Below are positions 11,902 to 34,900 of a stretch of 64,000 bases of DNA, in pieces. The DNA comes from Zygnema circumcarinatum SAG 698-1b (taxonomy: Eukaryota; Plantae; Zygnematophyceae). The stretch's first letter is position 1; each line of letters begins with the position of its first letter. A program made the translations under genes and the position numbers. The stretch spans positions 5,991,909 through 6,055,908 of the forward strand of contig CM074804.1 in NCBI GenBank assembly GCA_037447605.1, given 5' to 3'. Below the pieces are notes generated by a model. That model saw only the letters and a program-made list of their open reading frames with translations. It searched no databases and was not told the origin of the DNA.

Positions 11902-12424
11902 CAGTAGGGGGTCCTCATATTTTCCACCCTGGTTCCGGGCAAAATGAGGCGAAAATATTAAATTTGCATATATAAGGTTCGTGTTACGAATAGACGGGCG
12001 GTATTATGTTAGAGTTCATGTTGAACCGTACGTATCGTATCGTACCGTATCGTACTGTATCATTTAGCTTCGTATCGTATCGTGACATATCGTGACGCAT
12101 ATACTGTATCATTTAGCATCGTGATCCAACCATCGGGGAGTTTCGTATCGTATTGACCGTTCGTATCGTATCGTATCGTATCGAAGTCAAGAAGACGGGG
12201 AGAAGAGCGAGCGCCTCTTACGGCGGCACGAGCGGGGAGATTAGGTGCGTTTTGCGTAAGCCCGTAACGGCTAGTACAGATAGTACGGACAGTACGAACA
12301 ACACGGACAGTACGAACAGTACGGCTAACACAAGTTACCGTACAAAAAAGTGGTTTCGGCAAAATTGGGGCGAAAATATTGAGGACGCACTCCTTGGGGT
12401 GGTAAATACGAGGACCCCCCACTG
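11902..12424. mobile_element. Non-autonomous TIR element (MITE, Tc1/mariner-like), 523 bp
   Basis: Left end CAGTAGGGGGTCCTCATATTTTCCACCC; reverse complement of right end CAGTGGGGGGTCCTCGTATTTACCACCC. TA flanks at 11900-11901 and 12425-12426. Subterminal direct repeat GGCAAAAT(G/TG)AGG/GGGCGAAAATATT near both ends. (TATCG)n/GTACG-rich interior with no transposase. Confidence 0.8.
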
Positions 12425-13012
12425 TATGGTACGGGGATGTACGGCAAGGCACGGAGATGTACAGTACGGTGCGGTGATGTACGGTATGGTACGGTACGTC
12501 CTTGACAAGCACAGCTTTGCAAACGCAGTCGCGCATTTGAACAGGTGGTCAACGTTGGAAATAGTGAAGTGGCTGGCAGATGACCTGGGTCAATCAAGGT
12601 GGGAAATGGCAACGTGCAAGGGCCAGTATGCTGAGCTCCAAATGGAAGAAAACAGGGAGGCCTGGAAAGTTGGCACAATTATCAACAGAGAGGGTAAACA
12701 TGAGGATCATCATTGTTTTAGTTATTTTTGCATTACGGCGAGCAGGATGCCCTCTGAAAGCCTTTCGAACAGCCATCGACCTGCTTATCCTAAAAGAATA
12801 ATATTAGTGAAAAAATGATTTTTTTTACATGTAAATTTGGCAGATTCCTACCGGAGGAGCATACAATCAGCTCCAAAATCAATATAAAATTAGAAGGAAA
12901 AGCCAAAAACCACTATCCTACAAAACTTAACCAGAAGAGACGAGAATTGCCTGGTCTCTTTTCACACCCTGCGAGCCTTAGGGTGCAGCAAGCAACAACC
13001 ACGATATGCCCC

Positions 13013-16000
13013 TCACATAACTACGCACTGCGCATCCGAATCCCCTGCACTCCTGTCCAGCCTTACTCCATTTTTGCTGCTGTCTTTGCCCTTCTTCTCC
13101 AACTGAGGCGGTGAGAATGTGATTGTCAGGCGAGTACTGGGAAGCCGCTGCATCCAACGGCCCATACGCCCCCAGGATTCCGGGAGATTGGCACAGCCCT
13201 TGATGTCCACCCGGGTCAAAGCCTTTAGGACGCCCAAACATTCTAGCGATGTAAGGCCTGAATCTTGAATCTCCACTTCCCGGAGGGCCCCCAGATGGCC
13301 GAATGATGGTGGGAGCTCAGAGAGAACAGGGAGGCCAAGCAGGCGGAGGGAATGGAGGGAGATTAGACCTCCGAAGGACCTTGGCAGGGATACAAATTTC
13401 GAACAGTGCTCAATGCGGAGGTCATAAAGGCAGATCAAGTGCCCAAAAGAGTCAGGTAGAGTGGTTAGCTGAGCTGAGTGGACGGAGAGATGCTGAAGAG
13501 CGGAGAGATGGCCAAAGGAGGAGGGGAGGGCGGCAATGGGAGTCCCCCGGATAGCCAGTGACTGTAAACTTGACAAGAATGGGAAGGAGGGAGGGAGCAC
13601 AGTAATCGAGGCACACTCGCGGACGCGGAGAGTCTCAAGAGCAACCAAACCTCCCATGGAGGACGGCAAGCAGCTAAGTCGGCGACAGTCGGTAATTTCG
13701 AATGATGTGAGGGAGGTCAGCTGCCCAAAACTTTCCGGAAGCAACATCAACGAATCGCACCATTGCACTTTCAGAAACTCCAAGGAGTGAAGTCTGCCGA
13801 AAGATTCTGGGAAAGTAACAAGCCTGTCCGCCGACTCAATCTCCAAGTATTTCAAAGCTGTTAGGTAACCAAATGTACTGGGAAGGCACACAAGGTCCCC
13901 CACTCCTGCCAAAACCAAAGATCTGAGGGAGCTTAGCTCGCCAAACGAGTCCGGCAGACATTCCAATCCCCGCAATCGAAGGGTCAGGGAGTCCAATGCA
14001 CCGAGTCGACCAAAACTGTCGGGTAATTCAATAAGACGTGCGCAGTCCACCACCTCTAACAGGGCCAGTTTCTTCAGACGACCGAAGTCATCCGGTAGCC
14101 CTTCCAATGACTGACAGTTGATGATTCTTAGCTTGCGGAGGGCTGACAGTTGGCCGAGCGACTCTGGAAGATGGAGGAGGGAGCTGCACCGCCAAATTTC
14201 AAGCACCTCTAGAGAGGACAATAGGCCGAAAGAATAGGGGAGGCTGGCAAGGCGAGGGCAGTGCAGAAGCTGGAGGGTCTGAAGACCTGAAAGTCTTCCA
14301 ATAGAGTTTGGGAGAATTTCAAGGCGATGGGCGTCTTTCATTATCATTGAGTTGAGAGTGCACAGCTTCCCAATGCTGCGCGGAATCTCTGCCAACTGAA
14401 CGCACTTACTAAGCTCCAAGTGTCGCAAGGACGTCCAATGGCCCATATTCTCAGGCAGAGCCTGCAGGGCAGGACAGTTGAGGAGTCGCAGCTCCTCCAA
14501 GGACCCAAGTTCCATTACAGAGGGCGGGAGGAAGGCCAAGTCACGACACTGTCTAAACTCCAACACTTGAAGGTGGGAAAGAAGTCCAAAACATTCGGGA
14601 AATACCGCCACATTCTGACAGCTGGTCGTCAGCGACTGCACTCCTGCAGTACGGTAAATGGGCAAAGGAAATTCTCCTTCACTCCACCCAAGTTCCAGTC
14701 TTCGCAAGTGGGGGAAAATGTGCCCGTCGATTCCCACCTTCTCAATCTCCTCCCCCTGCCCACTCGACGCTAACCTCTGCAGCACCCGGAAGCCAACCAA
14801 CTTGATAGTCCGCAAGGATGTCAACCTGCAGATTGTGGCTGGGAGCTGGGTAAGCCTCTCACAGTTGCTGATTTCTAAATACTCAAGAGCCGTCAGCTTT
14901 CCAATGGATGCTGGCAGAGAAGTGAGGTTGGAGCACAAGCTAATCTTCAGACTGCGAAGCTCTGAGAGCAGGCCAATGGATTCTGGGATGGCCAGAAGGC
15001 CCCGGACTTCTACAAGGCTGAGAGTTTTCAACGCCTTCAGCTCTCCCAAACTTTCTGGCAGAGATTTCACTCGCCGACATACGTCCAATTCAAACACCTC
15101 CAGGTCAAAAAGAAGGCCCATAGAGCCGGGGAAGCCGGCAACAAGGTCTGATTGGATGCGTAGCTCACGCAGGGAATTGAGGGTGCCTATAGCGGGTGGT
15201 AAAGCTTGGGGCTCCATTTTCGCTCCCGGAGTGCGGGGAACAGGGCCCGGACTGGAAGCAAGGACGAGAGTTCGGAGTTGAGGACAAGAAGTTTTCAGGT
15301 TGGCACAAAAGGAATTGGAGCAGACAAAGGCAGGGACTTCCAGAAATGTGAGGTTAGGAAATCGGTGGAGGAGAGTGAAGACCCCGCCTCTCCCGCTGTA
15401 ATTCACATTGTCGTTCAACCGCAGAGTCGACAAGCCATCGTTCGCCAACAGTGCCCATCGTTTACAGACTCGAGTGCAGCTGAGCCAGTCCTTGATAGAG
15501 TGGAGGCAGGAAATAACGGCGGTTATGCACTCGTCTGGCAAGTCCATGATGTGCATCGCCATGGCCCGCCCTTTGCTGGGTGTGGAGGTGGGAGAGCGCC
15601 ACTGCGAGCGCGGACTGCTGCTGTAGCTGCTGTTTGTGCTGTTGCTGCTGCTCCCCCCCGAGCTTGCGGCAAAGCTGTAGCTGAAGCTTGAGCTCAGACT
15701 TGCCGCCGAACTTTTCCGGCTCAAAGAGGTGTTCGCCTGCGGCTTTGATGCTTTGGGGGCTGTTCCGCATCCGTACAAGAGGGCGCTGCCTCCCGAGCTG
15801 CGGCCCCCTCTCGTGGTTTGATCGGCAACGGAGTCAGGTTCACCTGCACAGGATAGAGCACCCGAAATTTCAGGTAAGCAAATGAAGGGAAGAGAAAGAA
15901 ACGATACTCACGATACTTGTCCTTTCGTAGAAGAAGAGCAGCAGCCTATTTAGAAATATCAGAGAGAAAAGATGGAGATATTTCACAAGAATCTCACCCT

Positions 16001-17100
16001 TGGAGGGACCGCCTCCGATGGACGGCACCAGAAGCTTGAACTCTTTCACCTTCATGTTTGGGGGCAGGGCATTGACAGTCTTGGTATCTTCCAGACGTAC
16101 AGCTTTCTTTGCAAAATCTGTTCAGAGAATCAAGTTCCTATGGTCAGAAGCCTTCGAATGACATAGGAGGGTGGCATAGAACTGCTACATGATTAAAAGT
16201 ATCAAAGTTGACGACTGCAAGAACAAGCATACGATGTGTCAAAAAATGGCAAGAACATCCATTGATCGAAGGGACGTGAGAGAGGGGGAAAATGAGAAGG
16301 GCGAGATTGAAAGAGTAAGAGAAGGGCAGACCTGGCAGCTCAAGCTGAGGCACATCAGATTCCTCAGAGTCTTGCGAGAGGTCCACTTCAGAGTAATCTT
16401 CGATCGATGAATGCGTTGAAGTTGGCTCTGAGACTCATGGCAAAACCAACAGAAGTTAGAAAGAAGCGACAAAAGCAGGAAGGCAAGGAAGACACGCGAT
16501 GAAATCTGTAGTCTGTCTGCGGAAAACTCAAACTGACTGTTGTTACAAGCAAACAGACTCGAGAAGGATACATGTAACAGCAGTTGCGAAGTCAGTGCTC
16601 ACCTCTTGCAGTAGCCCTCTGTGTTGCCGAATTGTGGGACCCATCCTTAAAAGAATGTCTGAGGCCATCCATACTGACTGCCCTCAGTATTCGACTACCG
16701 ACTCGCGTCTGGGCGTCTCCATTCCCTCCACGCCGATCCTCTGCCACGCACAAAAGAAGAGCAAATCGCCCTCATGGGTACAACTTGCAACCTTAAAGCC
16801 GGCATAGCCAGTCCTAGCTGTAGCTGTCTCTGGTTTTGCATGTATGCACCTCGATGAATGTATGTGCACATGCTTATACATGTTTATGTATCCTACCTTG
16901 CTCTGAGGGCTTCTGATGTCTGATAGGTACAACCCTTTCCGGCTGCCACTCATTGACAAGACTAGGTTTTTTTATTCGACGAGCGAAAGTTGGAGATTCA
17001 GCCGGCAATTCAGCCGGCAAAGGCCTTCCTACTGAGGAGTGCTCCTCGGATGTCGATTCATCCTGGATAGTGTCATCTGCGTTCTCATAAGAAATTCCGC
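13013..17100 (-). CDS. F-box protein with ~27 NLR-type 24-aa LRRs and C-terminal CaaX (CVVM*); start codon unresolved
   Basis: The 2831-nt terminal exon (13013-15843, phase 1) contains F-box MDLPDECITAVISCL...VCKRW, repeats LPxSFGxLxxLxxLxIxxCxxLxx, and ends TGC GTA GTT ATG TGA. Four upstream open phase-1 exons (about 15998-16118, 16329-16425, 16603-16740, 16897-17100) join in frame and encode a low-complexity N-terminus. Confidence 0.88.
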
Positions 17101-19727
17101 CTGCATAACAAAAGAACTGTCAGTTTGTTAGCTTATGAACCGATGTTACTCTAAGTCCACTTAAGCGGGCAATAACGTATGTCAGGATGTTCCTAACAAT
17201 TCAAGAACAGCAAACCCTACCACCTCTTCCACCTGCTCCCACCACGCACAAGTAAACTAGTTTACTGATTCTTCTAATTATGCGTATCTCAAAGGTCAAC
17301 CTCAGAACCCTAATTGCAGTCAAAGGAGGACCATCAACCCAAGAGTTTAATCGCAGCTTACTTATGGAAGTCCGGCCCACTTTGTTCCGCAGGCCCAGAG
17401 TAGGAAGGGGGCTCTCTCCAAGATGTTTTTTGGCATCAAAGCTGCCCCAACGTTTGTAGGCTCTGCAGAACCGTCGTAGCAAGTTCGCAGACCGTCACTC
17501 GACAGGGACAGCATTTCAAACTTGGACAATATCGATGGCACGTCTTGGATGCAGTTTCAGATTCACCTACAAGCATTCTGATAATGACTACAGGCTGACG
17601 TCCGACATACTAAAAATATCAATGAAGCACATTGTCTGGCTTAAGGGGCACACTAATAGTGTTCCAGCTATATTTTCCCAAAGACTGCTAACTGCACCAG
17701 TTAACTTCGTTTCTTCGATACGACGGACTCCGACACTGGAAACCCTTTCACGTCATGCAAAAATGTGGAGAAGAGTTATGTCACAGGCAGTCGCAGTGAA
17801 GACGCCAAGCCATGACTTCAAAAACAGAGACCCACACAGCCCTAGACAATGCAGGACACGCCCTCTCCTCTGCATTTTGCTAAAAGCGGCTACATCCCCG
17901 CGAAAAATGAACAGTGCAGCCACCTTCCAAACTGCAAGAAAGACGACGCGCTTATGTCGCGGAGAGACGCATGCTCAGCCATGCGCCTCCCCCATCCTTT
18001 CGCACGAGGCTCAGTCCGCCCCATTACGCCTGTTACCAGAGATCGTCACAGAAACACAAATCTAGGGACCTCTTGCGGCACACATAGCGATCAAAATCTC
18101 TAAAAAGTTGAGCCAGCCGCTGATGAGCTAGTCCCTCTGCCTCAGGACGACTTTGAAAGGCGCCTTCCCTCCCTCATCCCTCAGGCCCTACGAGCAGGCA
18201 AAGGAATTGGCAGCGGAGATAGACCTCTGCTGAACAGCCATGGATCGAAGCCTTCAAAGACAGCAGCCTCCCGGCAAGCATGCTCCTGCGCGCCACGTGT
18301 CCGCTCACTCGGCCGCAGCAGCAGCCCGCAACCGCCCCGCCTCGTCGCGTCTCGCCTCCCTCCCTCCCTCTCTCTCTCCCTCTCTCCCACTCTGCTCTCC
18401 TCTCTCCCTCCCTCCCTCGCCGCGCGACAGTCGACGCTGCCGGCCGGCGCCTGTCGCCCGCCGCGCCGGCCACCGGCTGGGCGGGCAGGGGGGCGGGCGG
18501 GCGGGCGGCAGGCCCAAGCCGGTCCCATGTTTCCGGGCGCCGAAAAAAAATTCTTTCGGGCAGGTAGAATCAGCAGCTCCTGGGGCCGTACAGCGGCCTT
18601 GATGACATGGAGGCGCACTCTCGTACACCTGTACGACTGCTCGTACCTTCGCCGACGGCCACCGACAGAATGATGACGCTCGCAACTGGACAGGTGGGCG
18701 CTGCCGCCCGGCGGCGCCCTCATTGGGCGGCGGGTCGCGGTCGGGCGGCAGGCGGCGCGCGCCCATTGGCTGGCGAAGGGGCGCCTCCCGGCCGGCGGAA
18801 GCGCGCTCCGCACCGGACTCGGCGGGCGGCGCGCAACGCGACAAGCCTGCACGGGGCAATCTTTGTCGCGTTGAGGACCTCGCCGTGTGCCGTACAGTGG
18901 CGGGCGTAACCGCCGCAACCGTCGCCGTACGGCCTGTGCGCGCGCGCGGGCGGGCGAGCAGGCGCTGGCAGCAGGGCGAGGGCGAGGGCGGGCCCGGTCG
19001 GTCGGTCTGTCCTGTCTGTCCTGCCTGTCCTCGCCGCCGCTCGCGGAGGCGCAGCTTCCTAGAAGTGCGGGTGCGCCGTACTGCTTTACCGTACATGCTC
19101 GCCGGGCCGGGCCGGGCGGCAGCGGCTCTTTGTCGGCAGGGGCTGTACGGGACTGCCGCGCTGGCAGGCACCGGGCAGGTCAGCGCCGCCGCGTGACTTT
19201 ATTCCGAGCACGGCCCCGTTTTTTGAGAGGGGCAGCAGCAAACAAACAACCAACACTTTACTTTATCGAAACGGAAGCCCTGGCCGGCCTCGGAGGGGCG
19301 GGCGGGCCGGCGCCCTCTCGTCGTCCATCCATCCGTCCGTCCGTCCGTCGTCGTCGTCGGGTCGGGCGGCAGCGCATGGATGGCGCATGGCTGGCGCATG
19401 GTCACGGCCCCGCGGCACATGCCGCTGTGACGTGACAGTCGGCCCTCGCCTCCAGTCAGTCCAGTCCGACGCGCCACGCACGGCACGGCATGGCACGGCA
19501 CCGCCCGCCCGCCCGCCCGCCCGCCCCTCGTCGACTGTGTGGCCTTCCGTCCGGCGGGCTTCTCTCCCTCTCTCCCTCCCTCCCTCCCTCCCTCCCTCCC
19601 TCCCTCCCTCCCTCTCTCCCTGCGCGCGGCGTTCCCGGCATGACACGACGTGGCGACCTGACCTCCCCGCCCGCCTGCCCGCCTGCCTGCCGCGGCGAGC
19701 CGCGCTGTTGTTGGTGTTGTTGTTGTG

Positions 19728-31957: not shown

Positions 31958-34900
31958 ATGGGAGATGGAGACCAACGGAAGCACAGAATATTGATGGTGT
32001 CTGATTTTTTTTATCCAAATTTTGGAGGTGTAGAGAATCATATTTATTATTTGTCTCAATGCCTACTCAAACGGGGGCATAAGGTCAGGATTAATTCTTT
32101 TTCTTCCCATGATCTTTTTGACCCCATTGTATGTGCCGGATGATTGTCCTCAGGACTAGCTTCTTGCCAGTGGTGAATGAAGCAAAAGGGATGCTAGAAG
32201 CTAATGGAAGATTCGCTTAACCTATCCTCTTTGTCACTCCCATTGCGAAACTGTCTATGCTTCCAAGTGCTTTCCCATCGGTCGCCATACTTGGCGAGAC
32301 TATCTTTCCCAATACTAGTCGTCAAGCAATTGTCATCTTGGTTTATTTCTAAAGACTTTATTGCAAAGCATCTTAATGCACTGAATACTCTGAGTTTTGG
32401 TTTCCCCACTTCTTTTCTCGTCTTTGTCTTCTTCGTGCTTCGCCTGCCTAGCAGGTGGTTGTCCTCACACACGCCTATGGAAACCGTTCTGGAGTTCGAT
32501 GGATGACAAATGGTTTGAAGGTGTATTATGCTCCTCGGCTCACCTTCTACCTGCAAAACACTCTGCCCACAGTATGGGGCACGCTGCCCCTCCTGCGCTC
32601 CATCGTACTGCGTGAGCGCATCACTCTGCTTCATGGACACCAAGCCTTTTCCACTCTCTGCCACGAGGCCCTCCTGCATGCTCGAACTCTCGGGTTGCCA
32701 GTGGTTTTTACCGACCATTCGCTCTATGGATTTGCAGATCTAGGGAGCATTCACATGAATAAGGTAGGACTGCAGAATGCTGGAGAACAATGGTTATCGC
32801 CTGTTTGGCCTGTGTTTGATTCGATGGCCCGTTTTTGGAAGATGACAGAAGCACGTTTTCACCTAGAATGCTTCTCCACCTTCTCCTACAGGTCCTGCAG
32901 TTCACTCTGGCCGACGTCCATCATGCTATATGCGTCTCTCACACGAGCAAAGAGAACACCGTTCTTCGTTCCGGTATTCCTCCCCATCGAGTCTCTGTCA
33001 TCCCCAACGCTGTCGACGCGTGCATGTTCCGCCCGGACCCTTCGCGGCGTCACGCAGACCGGATCACCATCATAGTGCTGAGCCGACTCGTTTACAGGAA
33101 GGGAGCCGACCTCTTGGTGGAGGTTATTCCTGAAGTGTGCCGGCAATATCCCCAGGTAGGACCCTCTGCTTCATCACCCTGTTGTATAGCTCCTGCAGGT
33201 GACTGCATGGAGTCTCGACTTCTCCCACTTCAGGCCTCGGCTGTGTATGTGCATCCCTGATCGATTTCACGTGTTGTTTGATGCCCGTCTTGAACATGTT
33301 AGATGGTTTACCGGCTGTTATTTCAGCACTTGTTTGATTTCATTTGTTAGAGTGATTCGTCGCACTACGGAGCATTTTGAAAACCTCCGTGGATGAAGAA
33401 ATGGCGTTCATGGAAGCGCCGGTTTTCATGTTCCTGGTCTTTTCCCCCTCACGGGTCTCGCCAGGTCCACTTCATTGTGGGAGGCGATGGTCCGAAGCGC
33501 GCAGCGATCGAGGAGATGCGCGACCGCCATGGCCTGCACGCGCGGGTGGTCATGCTCGGGGCAGTGCCGCATGCGCATGTGCGCTCGGTGCTCACTCAAG
33601 GGCACATCTTTTTGAACAGGTACGCAGAGACAGAGGAAGCTAAGCTGCTTCACAATGTTTGCGAGTGGTTTCCCCTTCCTGTTGCAGGTGGGGCTGATGG
33701 GGTCAGTTGCTTTACATTGTTACATTGTTTTTGGGCCCAGTTCTGCAAAAAATGTGTACAATGAGAAGCATGCTCGCAGTTCTGGACTTGTTGCCATTGT
33801 CATCTCTCTCTCCTTGTCGCCATTGCCCTCCTTTTGCTAGTAAGTTGAGGGGCTTGGTGCCGGGCAGCTCCCTCACGGAGGCCTTCTGCATTGCCCTCCT
33901 CGAGGCGGCGAGCTGCGGCCTCCTCGCTGTCAGCACGCGCGTCGGGGGAGTCCCAGAGGTGGGCCCTCTCCGGTCCTGTTCGTGGTTTGTGAGTGAAGGG
34001 GCCGGGAGGACTACCCCGCTCTGCACTTGAACGAATTATCTGAATAGGAGCACTGACTTTTGGAGAGCAGCGGAGATGCCTCTACAGGTGTCGTATGGGT
34101 TTCGACGCGTGGCTTTTCAGACTTGTTGTCGCTTGCAGAGGACTCAGGCCCTGTTCGGAGGGGGAGGGGGGCAGGTGTTGCCGGCCGACATGATGGTGCT
34201 GGCCGATACTCGGCCTCCTGCTATTGTGGCTGCAATAGGGGAGGCCATAAACAGGTTGCCAGATATCAATCCCTGGTCTTTGCACCACAGGGTAGGCCAT
34301 TGTCTTCCTTGAGACCACCCGTTGCGGGCTGCATGTGAAGGCAGAATAGCTTCTTGACAGAATGAATCGCTGGTGTGATGCTGCCAGAAGGAAATTTGAG
34401 GGGTTATTTAGGAGTACCAATCTTTGCTTGCAATTAAAGGTGGATATTGCAAGGGCCTGCAGCTCAGCTATATTCAGTCGCTGCATATTGTACGAATGGT
34501 CAGGGATTCATGCATAGTCGTGAATACAAAGTTGAATAGAGTGTGTAGCAAGGAAGCACTATGTTGCAGGCGGCCGCCATGTACGATTGGCGCAGTGTGG
34601 CGCGGCGCACTGAGTGCGCGTACGGGCGGGCGGCGATGGCGGAGAGGGAGACCCTCCTCGCCCGCCTTGCAAGGCGAGCCGGGGGACCCCTGCACTCTCT
34701 ATTGATTTGCGCTTCTCTCTCGCTTGGAAATGCATTTGCTTCGTGCAACTCCCTTCAGGAAACAAGAGCAGGAATGGACGTGAATGTAGTTACCGAAGCA
34801 GCCTAATGATTAGAATAGCATCGACAGATTTCTGTCACTTGTATGGGTTAGTGCCCAGTGAAAGAAGTCAGACAGGGCCTTATAGCGTGGAAGGTTGGGC

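Follow-up and report, generated by a model that had tools for sequence, protein, structure and literature searches.

Does an alga near the land plants encode a ubiquitin ligase receptor that carries its own signal for lipid attachment? The question is raised by a minus-strand gene in a stretch of 64,000 nucleotides from Zygnema circumcarinatum SAG 698-1b (GenBank assembly GCA_037447605.1, contig CM074804.1, positions 5,991,909 to 6,055,908 of the forward strand); this whole stretch is called the window here, and positions are counted from its first letter. A preliminary description of the sequence had reported an F-box, about 27 tandem leucine-rich repeats (LRRs) of 24 residues and a C-terminal CaaX box at 13013-15843, and had read the product as a prenylated immune or surveillance module at membranes. 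From the transcripts, domains, predicted structure and relatives of this gene, we consider its product to be a probable farnesylated substrate receptor of the SKP1-CUL1-F-box (SCF) type, with a probability of roughly 0.55.

Gene structure and expression

The gene was found to be expressed and to consist of seven exons, and the interval 13013-15843 proved to coincide exactly with the coding sequence of the last exon alone; the gene itself is longer, with six upstream exons and a full protein of 1168 residues. The RNA evidence consisted of spliced assembled contigs (Logan) of four runs from three studies, which were compared with positions 12300-18200 of the window; in the RNA search, six runs (three studies) contained about 80% of the words of positions 12600-17600. 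All four runs contained spliced minus-strand contigs with CT..AC joints, which equal GT..AG introns. The minus-strand open reading frame (ORF) at 13013-15778 has 921 open codons, and its frame stays open on to the splice acceptor at 15843. In the spliced message it belongs to one long ORF of 1168 codons that begins with the ATG at 18241, and an in-frame stop sits 4 codons upstream of this ATG.

The last exon (12747..15843, minus strand) comprises the remainder of a Ser-rich region, the F-box, all of the LRRs, the tail, the stop codon at 13013-13015 and a 3' untranslated region (UTR) of about 266 nt. Single contigs in the four runs extend over 12707/12747-15839 with zero differences. No splice joint was listed within this exon in the contigs of the four runs, and none passes the CVVM stop, a type of splicing that had been named beforehand as refuting; the assembled message therefore keeps this stop. 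A pseudogene or a mis-assembled ORF would agree with the broken state of the sole close homologue described below, but this explanation is essentially refuted by the uninterrupted spliced ORF with its canonical introns, by the last exon that four runs reproduce without mismatch and by a fold that was predicted with high confidence.

Domain organization and predicted structure

The F-box of the preliminary description was confirmed. The F-box-like family PF12937 (Pfam) matched residues 78-115 of the ORF with an E-value of 2.3e-9 and 37.3 bits, which is above the curated cut-off of 24.3; the domain lies at 15434..15547 (minus strand) and occupies approximately residues 325-362 of the full-length protein. 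By sequence it is SKP2-like, as its best match among solved structures in the PDB was human SKP2 (FBXL1), with LPDE, SCL and VCKRW in common. An AlphaFold2 model was obtained for the F-box-to-end part of the protein (849 residues, 40-row alignment) with a mean predicted local distance difference test (pLDDT) score of 88.4 and a predicted template modelling (pTM) score of 0.80. In this model, the F-box forms three helices at residues 10-43, and the first LRR strand follows the third helix at residue 46. The LRRs are thus predicted to stand directly C-terminal to the F-box, as in SKP2 and the FBXL class. The similarity to SKP2 is otherwise limited: the match covers only the F-box of about 37 residues, with an E-value of 1e-3, and SKP2 has 10 LRRs of the cysteine-containing (CC) type and no CaaX box.

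The F-box is followed by a linker of three irregular repeats (15188..15433, minus strand), with strands at residues 46, 73 and 98 of the model and 48-49% identity to the closest homologue. Beyond it, the LRR solenoid (13118..15184, minus strand) consists of about 27 repeats of 23-24 residues and a C-terminal cap, as delineated by Pfam LRR families and the repeat register. The register search gave 24 canonical units with the consensus LxxLxxLxLxxCxxLxxLPxSFGx in addition to irregular ones, and the total of about 27 agrees with the original count. The model revealed 31 β-strands in one long solenoid, including the three linker repeats and the cap, with pLDDT values mostly of at least 90. The array is broken by an irregular, low-confidence insert at 14621..14770 (minus strand; model residues 265-314), where pLDDT falls below 50 at residues 265-270 and 299-314, and the close homologue has a 12-residue deletion at this site. 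Tandem Repeats Finder revealed no DNA-level LRR repeat; the repeats are therefore old and have not undergone recent expansion.

The repeats matched the Pfam families LRR_14 (1.6e-62), LRR_R13L1-DRL21 (1.6e-34), the RPS4B-like LRR_13 (1.3e-28) and LRR_RPS2 (5.2e-20), while LRR_6 (PF13516), the family of the ribonuclease-inhibitor-like (RNI) or CC type, gave no match at E<=1. The FBXL class is characterized by CC/RNI-type LRRs of about 26 residues; the present repeats have 23-24 residues and belong with LRR_14, LRR_13 and LRR_RPS2.

The C-terminal tail and the CaaX box

The final codons of the gene, TGC GTA GTT ATG TGA at 13027-13013, encode CVVM followed by the stop, so that the terminal sequence given in the preliminary description was read directly and is kept in the spliced contigs. 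The CaaX box itself lies at 13016..13027 (minus strand), with TGA following at 13013-13015. It is preceded by a flexible C-terminal tail with a basic patch (13028..13102, minus strand). Model residues 821-849 have pLDDT values below 50 and no secondary structure, with CVVM at the very end of these 29 residues; the CaaX box would therefore be carried on a flexible linker, as prenyltransferase substrates require.

CVVM conforms to the CaaX rule of farnesyltransferase (FTase), with Cys at position -4, an aliphatic residue at a2 and Met as X, at the C-terminus of an expressed protein. The same box occurs in N-Ras and was farnesylated by human FTase in a reporter assay (PMC11152559), which agrees with the farnesylation signal that had been proposed. 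In Arabidopsis, protein farnesyltransferase prefers CaaX boxes in which X is Met, Cys or Ser, and protein geranylgeranyltransferase I prefers Leu (PMC6866125). Judged by its sequence, the Zygnema box is thus a putative farnesylation signal.

Prenylation alone directs proteins to endomembranes, and the plasma membrane requires a second signal (PMC9988375). No second Cys was found near the CaaX box in the tail of the Zygnema protein or of its close homologue. The basic patch was confirmed; it is not conserved, as the tail of the homologue is net acidic. Since no second membrane signal is conserved, a weak or dynamic attachment is expected rather than a fixed plasma-membrane anchor, and the stable membrane anchoring of the preliminary description is not indicated.

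Homologues and retention of the CaaX box

An exhaustive HMMER search of 1.84 billion representative sequences, with the F-box plus linker (125 residues) as the query, gave 10 matches only, one of which was close (P0121, 49% identical over the F-box and linker). This match is encoded on a 3460-bp metagenome scaffold (L001) of ENA, and tblastn revealed that the scaffold carries the whole gene from the F-box to the end at about 53% identity. Its last ORF ends with ...IPEKCKVM-stop. The two proteins have the cap LPESWG.MGRWM...TITF.PPQ in common; beyond the cap, their tails cannot be aligned and are unlike in length and charge. Both tails nevertheless terminate in C-x-V-M, although the preceding 20-25 residues are unrelated. 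This shared terminus is the main evidence that suggests selection on the CaaX box. Nothing was found on CKVM as a farnesylation box in the literature search.

Alternatively, the same protein could be soluble and act as an SCF F-box/LRR adaptor, with a CVVM ending that is unused or without consequence and that the homologue shares through common descent or chance. Several observations speak for it and weigh against a farnesylated receptor. The conservation of the CaaX box rests on a single homologue, which appears disabled: the L001 gene has two frameshifts at about 593-736, spreading it over three frames, and an in-frame stop at 1810-1812, at the Trp of KVQWCD in the Zygnema protein, and its F-box has LT in place of LP. 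The three remote relatives P0122, P0124 and P0125 (about 31-35% identical), which combine an F-box-like domain with LRR_14-type repeats, end without a CaaX box; the stop codons of P0124 and P0125 lie within their contigs, and P0122 is a transcriptome ORF that may be incomplete. A conserved polybasic or palmitoylatable second signal is absent from the tail. Furthermore, Logan contigs omit rare isoforms; a major splice past the CVVM stop is excluded, and a minor 3' variant could escape.

However, C-x-V-M-stop was retained at the exact terminus though the tail had diverged, for which we estimate a chance of about 1e-4 to 1e-3 under a loose definition of CaaX, and CVVM is a proven FTase substrate (PMC11152559) that the model places on a disordered, accessible tail. 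We therefore regard a purely soluble adaptor as rather unlikely and prefer the farnesylated receptor. Among the relatives, the CaaX box is kept in the sole close homologue and absent from the three remote ones.

The damage to the L001 gene could reflect either a pseudogene or a faulty assembly. Its LRRs show the conservation pattern left by prolonged purifying selection, as in a recent pseudogene or an assembly error.

Further searches added no close relative. A word-index search with the F-box and linker (residues 1-125) gave no match, and when the C-terminal 182 residues served as the query, the ORF of the L001 scaffold was the sole match. Two scans of JGI metagenomes, one with patterns of the C-terminal cap and one with patterns of the F-box, gave no confirmed relatives. 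None of the 120 matches listed among 1494 LRR matches carries an F-box family, a Pfam rescan of seven high-coverage LRR matches, including Closterium proteins, revealed no hidden F-box, and tblastn of the protein against the window revealed no paralogue. In ESM Atlas features, F-box/LRR clusters scored 0.89-0.92 with few shared features and serve as leads only. One such lead, at rank 10, is a Nucleocytoviricota cluster that combines F-box, LRR_4 and LRR_14; the joining of an F-box with 'typical' LRRs may also be circulating in giant viruses of algae or protists.

Class and conservation of the LRR surface

To the preliminary description, the LRRs were of the type found in nucleotide-binding LRR (NLR) immune receptors, and the protein was an immune or surveillance sensor lacking NB-ARC, whose NLR-like surface would recognise ligands or effectors for ubiquitination at membranes. 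The sequence searches give this proposal a certain basis. The best match of the whole protein was a TIR-NB-LRR protein of Pinus (E-value of 7.5e-116, 35% identity over 76% of the query), the Pfam LRR families with NLR names match strongly, and the LRRs of Roq1 and RPP1 were among the PDB sequence matches. The repeats also resemble those of plant TIR-NLR and CC-NLR proteins (Roq1, RPP1, RPS4 and RPS2 type), which have the 24-residue pattern LxxLxLxxCxxLxxLPxxIGxL and correspond to LRR_13 and LRR_RPS2.

The same LRRs are, however, shared far beyond the NLRs. The word-index search with the whole F-box-to-end protein (849 residues) gave the 1494 LRR matches, of which the best was only 35% identical, and the NLRs were followed at similar identity by LRR-only proteins of Closterium, bacterial ROCO/COR proteins and a choanoflagellate protein. 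The PDB sequence matches were mixed and included SHOC2 and Leptospira LIC proteins (E-values of about 1e-34 to 1e-36), receptor-kinase ectodomains, Roq1 and RPP1. Upon structural comparison with Foldseek, the best fits were Leptospira LIC11098, with a TM-score on the target of 0.74, and SHOC2, for which it reached at most 0.67; all were generic LRR proteins, and no F-box protein was among the 50 matches listed. As this LRR type is present in SHOC2, LRRD1, ROCO, Leptospira LIC and Closterium LRR-only proteins, the label 'NLR-type' is only partly apt: the repeats are indeed not of the RNI/CC type, and they constitute a widespread intracellular class of 24-residue LRRs that is not specific to NLRs. 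The Pfam scans of the last exon and of every upstream exon revealed no NB-ARC (PF00931), other NTPase, TIR or coiled-coil domain, so the protein is free of NB-ARC, as proposed. Unlike the NLR receptors, it also lacks RPW8.

The LRR surface was compared position by position between the Zygnema protein and L001, using colinear tblastn high-scoring segment pairs and the repeat register; the comparison concerns one sequence pair. A MAFFT alignment of the three ORF pieces of L001 had mis-registered the repeats and was replaced by the tblastn segments. At the structural LRR positions, 151 of 196 residues were identical (77%). Identity was 62% (50/80) at the exposed concave β-strand positions 5, 7, 9 and 10 and 31% (48/157) at the variable convex and loop positions 1, 2, 12, 13, 15, 16, 19 and 23; the difference between the exposed concave and the convex/loop positions had a Fisher p-value of 3e-6. 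Within the protein, no positions vary more from repeat to repeat than 9 and 10 (3.4 bits each), yet these are 75% and 65% identical between the homologues. In this one pair, the pattern is that expected of a specific, conserved binding face and appears opposite to the hypervariability of NLR LRRs. The conserved concave face therefore points to fixed partners rather than to variable immune ligands. Together with the missing NB-ARC, TIR and coiled-coil domains, the structural fits to LIC11098 and SHOC2, the absence of a local paralogue cluster in the window and the age of the repeats, this makes an immune or surveillance sensor improbable, and that part of the preliminary description was not supported.

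Proposed mode of action

As a farnesylated SCF receptor, the protein would dock on SKP1 through its SKP2-like F-box, and its LRR solenoid, with about 30 turns, would engage a single conserved partner or a small number of them through the concave face. The flexible 29-residue tail would present CVVM to protein farnesyltransferase, and farnesylation, followed by cleavage of aaX and methylation, would bias the ligase to endomembranes or away from the nucleus. The outcome could be a dynamic association with endomembranes, or nuclear exclusion as for Arabidopsis ASG2 (PMC6866125). The Ser-rich N-terminus may regulate the receptor.

Comparison with known systems

The preliminary description had pointed to F-box proteins with a CaaX box in animals (FBXL2/FBXL20) and in Legionella (AnkB), and both precedents are documented (PMC9988375, PMC5506055). 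FBXL2 and FBXL20 have the same order of an F-box, an LRR solenoid and a C-terminal CaaX box. The lipid of FBXL2 is needed for membrane localisation, SCF assembly and the engagement of membrane substrates (PMC9988375), and conservation of the FBL2 prenylation motif extends from mammals to fungi (PMC1847700). There are also clear differences. The LRRs of FBXL2 are of the CC/RNI type (the LRR_6 kind), for which the Zygnema protein has no match. Furthermore, FBXL2 ends in CVIL, is geranylgeranylated and has two palmitoylated Cys residues by its CaaX box, whereas the Zygnema protein ends in the farnesyl-type CVVM with no Cys nearby. The Zygnema protein is also about three times longer, with a disordered N-terminus of 319 residues. 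No orthology to FBXL2 was detected, and the CaaX box was therefore probably acquired independently, as far as the sequences indicate. By analogy, the Zygnema protein may work like FBXL2 without being a member of its family, and FBXL2/FBXL20 would be its closest functional analogues.

An architecture with an N-terminal F-box and a C-terminal CaaX box is also found in yeast Rcy1p (PMC2175155) and in Legionella AnkB (PMC5506055). Rcy1p recycles cargo without a cullin (PMC2175155), and the Zygnema protein could likewise act in a non-SCF Skp1/F-box complex in membrane traffic. An N-terminal F-box and a terminal CAAX box occur together in Rcy1p and its fungal homologues (PMC2175155), an architecture formally analogous to the present one. 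On the other hand, Rcy1p has no LRRs, no sequence or domain similarity to it was found outside the F-box, and the body of the Zygnema protein is an LRR solenoid, the classic substrate-binding module of F-box proteins; we consider such a function very improbable and retain the SCF receptor as the preferred reading. AnkB differs in being a bacterial effector with ankyrin repeats, while the Zygnema gene is eukaryotic, spliced and LRR-based.

SHOC2, the plant PIRL proteins and the Leptospira LIC proteins, which have 'Ras-group' LRRs, provided the best structural matches, but they are scaffolds and have neither an F-box nor a CaaX box. In the plant lineage, Arabidopsis ASG2 is a substrate receptor of a cullin-RING ligase (CUL4-DDB1, DWD) that has a farnesylation signal, and farnesylation excludes it from the nucleus (PMC6866125). 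In contrast to the Zygnema protein, ASG2 has a WD40/DDB1-binding architecture, uses another cullin and contains no F-box or LRR. No plant or algal F-box protein with a CaaX box was found in the literature, of which our search covered a part.

Tentatively, the plant lineage may have independently built a lipid-anchored SCF from an F-box, LRRs of the NLR/Ras group in place of FBXL-type LRRs and an N-Ras-type box, which would confine ubiquitylation to endomembrane-associated substrates. If so, no prenylated F-box protein would have been described in Archaeplastida before it, as far as our searches show, and it would be convergent with FBXL2. Among cullin-RING receptors with a lipid anchor, only FBXL2, FBXL20 and FBXO10 of animals have a well-established role in restricting ubiquitylation to a compartment. 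ASG2 is the one comparable plant case that we found, and the Zygnema protein would be the second and of the SCF type. In addition, algae near the land plants would already have joined the intracellular 'NLR-style' LRR to non-NLR effector domains, which bears on the recruitment of the LRRs of NLRs. The claim is a modest one: none of the parts is new, the immune reading lacks support and the evidence of conservation comes from one relative.

Upstream exons and alternative transcripts

The first exon (18225..18383, minus strand) contains a 5' UTR of at least 142 nt and the ATG at 18241-18239, with a GT donor following 18225. It was identified from loose contig ends at 17464, of 158 letters in runs X1 and X2 and of 28 letters in X3, which match the window from 18227 onward; the gene thus reaches 18383 or beyond. 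Exon 2 (17362..17462, minus strand) encodes part of the disordered N-terminus and has AG/GT boundaries in four runs. Exon 3 (16897..17100, minus strand), which encodes a further part of it and has no Pfam family, is delimited by the joints 17099->17361 and 16740->16897 in all four runs. The coding exon 4 (16603..16740, minus strand) has joints in X1, X3 and X5, and an X2 contig at 16332-16742 retains the intron. Exon 5 (16332..16427, minus strand) encodes an acidic, Ser-rich stretch, with the joint 16117->16332 in all four runs. Exon 6 (15998..16117, minus strand) is coding and in phase with the F-box exon; the joint is 15839->15994 (cut +4) in all four runs, and across the junction with the last exon the frame reads on as GGGPSK-G-EPDS. 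An extra exon at 15913-15945 (AAALLLRKDKY), which would also be in phase, was rejected, as the RNA contigs skip that stretch.

The six upstream exons encode the N-terminal 319 residues, which are rich in Ser, Ala, Gly, Arg and Pro. No Pfam family was found in the peptides of the upstream exons, which were scanned exon by exon, so that any domain spanning an exon junction might have escaped detection. This disordered, Ser-rich region is probably regulatory.

An alternative 5' end was observed at low depth in X1, in which the joint 17462->17924 leads to another first exon at 17924-18073 with an open frame and other Met codons. An unspliced X5 contig spans 17361-17924, and the intron retained in X2 is 16428-16602. 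The first exon also begins an upstream ORF of 27 codons on the minus strand (18201-18281), whose ATG at 18281 has A at position -3; it overlaps the main ATG at 18241 out of frame and crosses the first splice junction. Through leaky scanning, this upstream ORF may place the F-box gene under translational control.

Surroundings of the gene

Upstream of the gene, positions 18300-19200 have about 66% G+C, with GAGA-rich runs at 18340-18410, a CACGTG G-box at about 18300 and CCAAT at about 18720 and 18766; this block probably represents promoter and 5' UTR sequence. The promoter module CCAAT-N9-CCACG had 0 exact matches in the window. Just downstream of the gene, positions 12300-12500 contain a short-period repeat with GTACGG/ACAGTAC-like units, which is represented by many high-depth contigs with differing flanks and several variant letters and looks like a dispersed, transcribed repeat family. 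Further away, an ORF piece on the plus strand (32455-33075) matches PIGA, the GlcNAc transferase subunit of GPI-anchor biosynthesis, with an E-value of 1e-41 and is probably one exon of this housekeeping gene.

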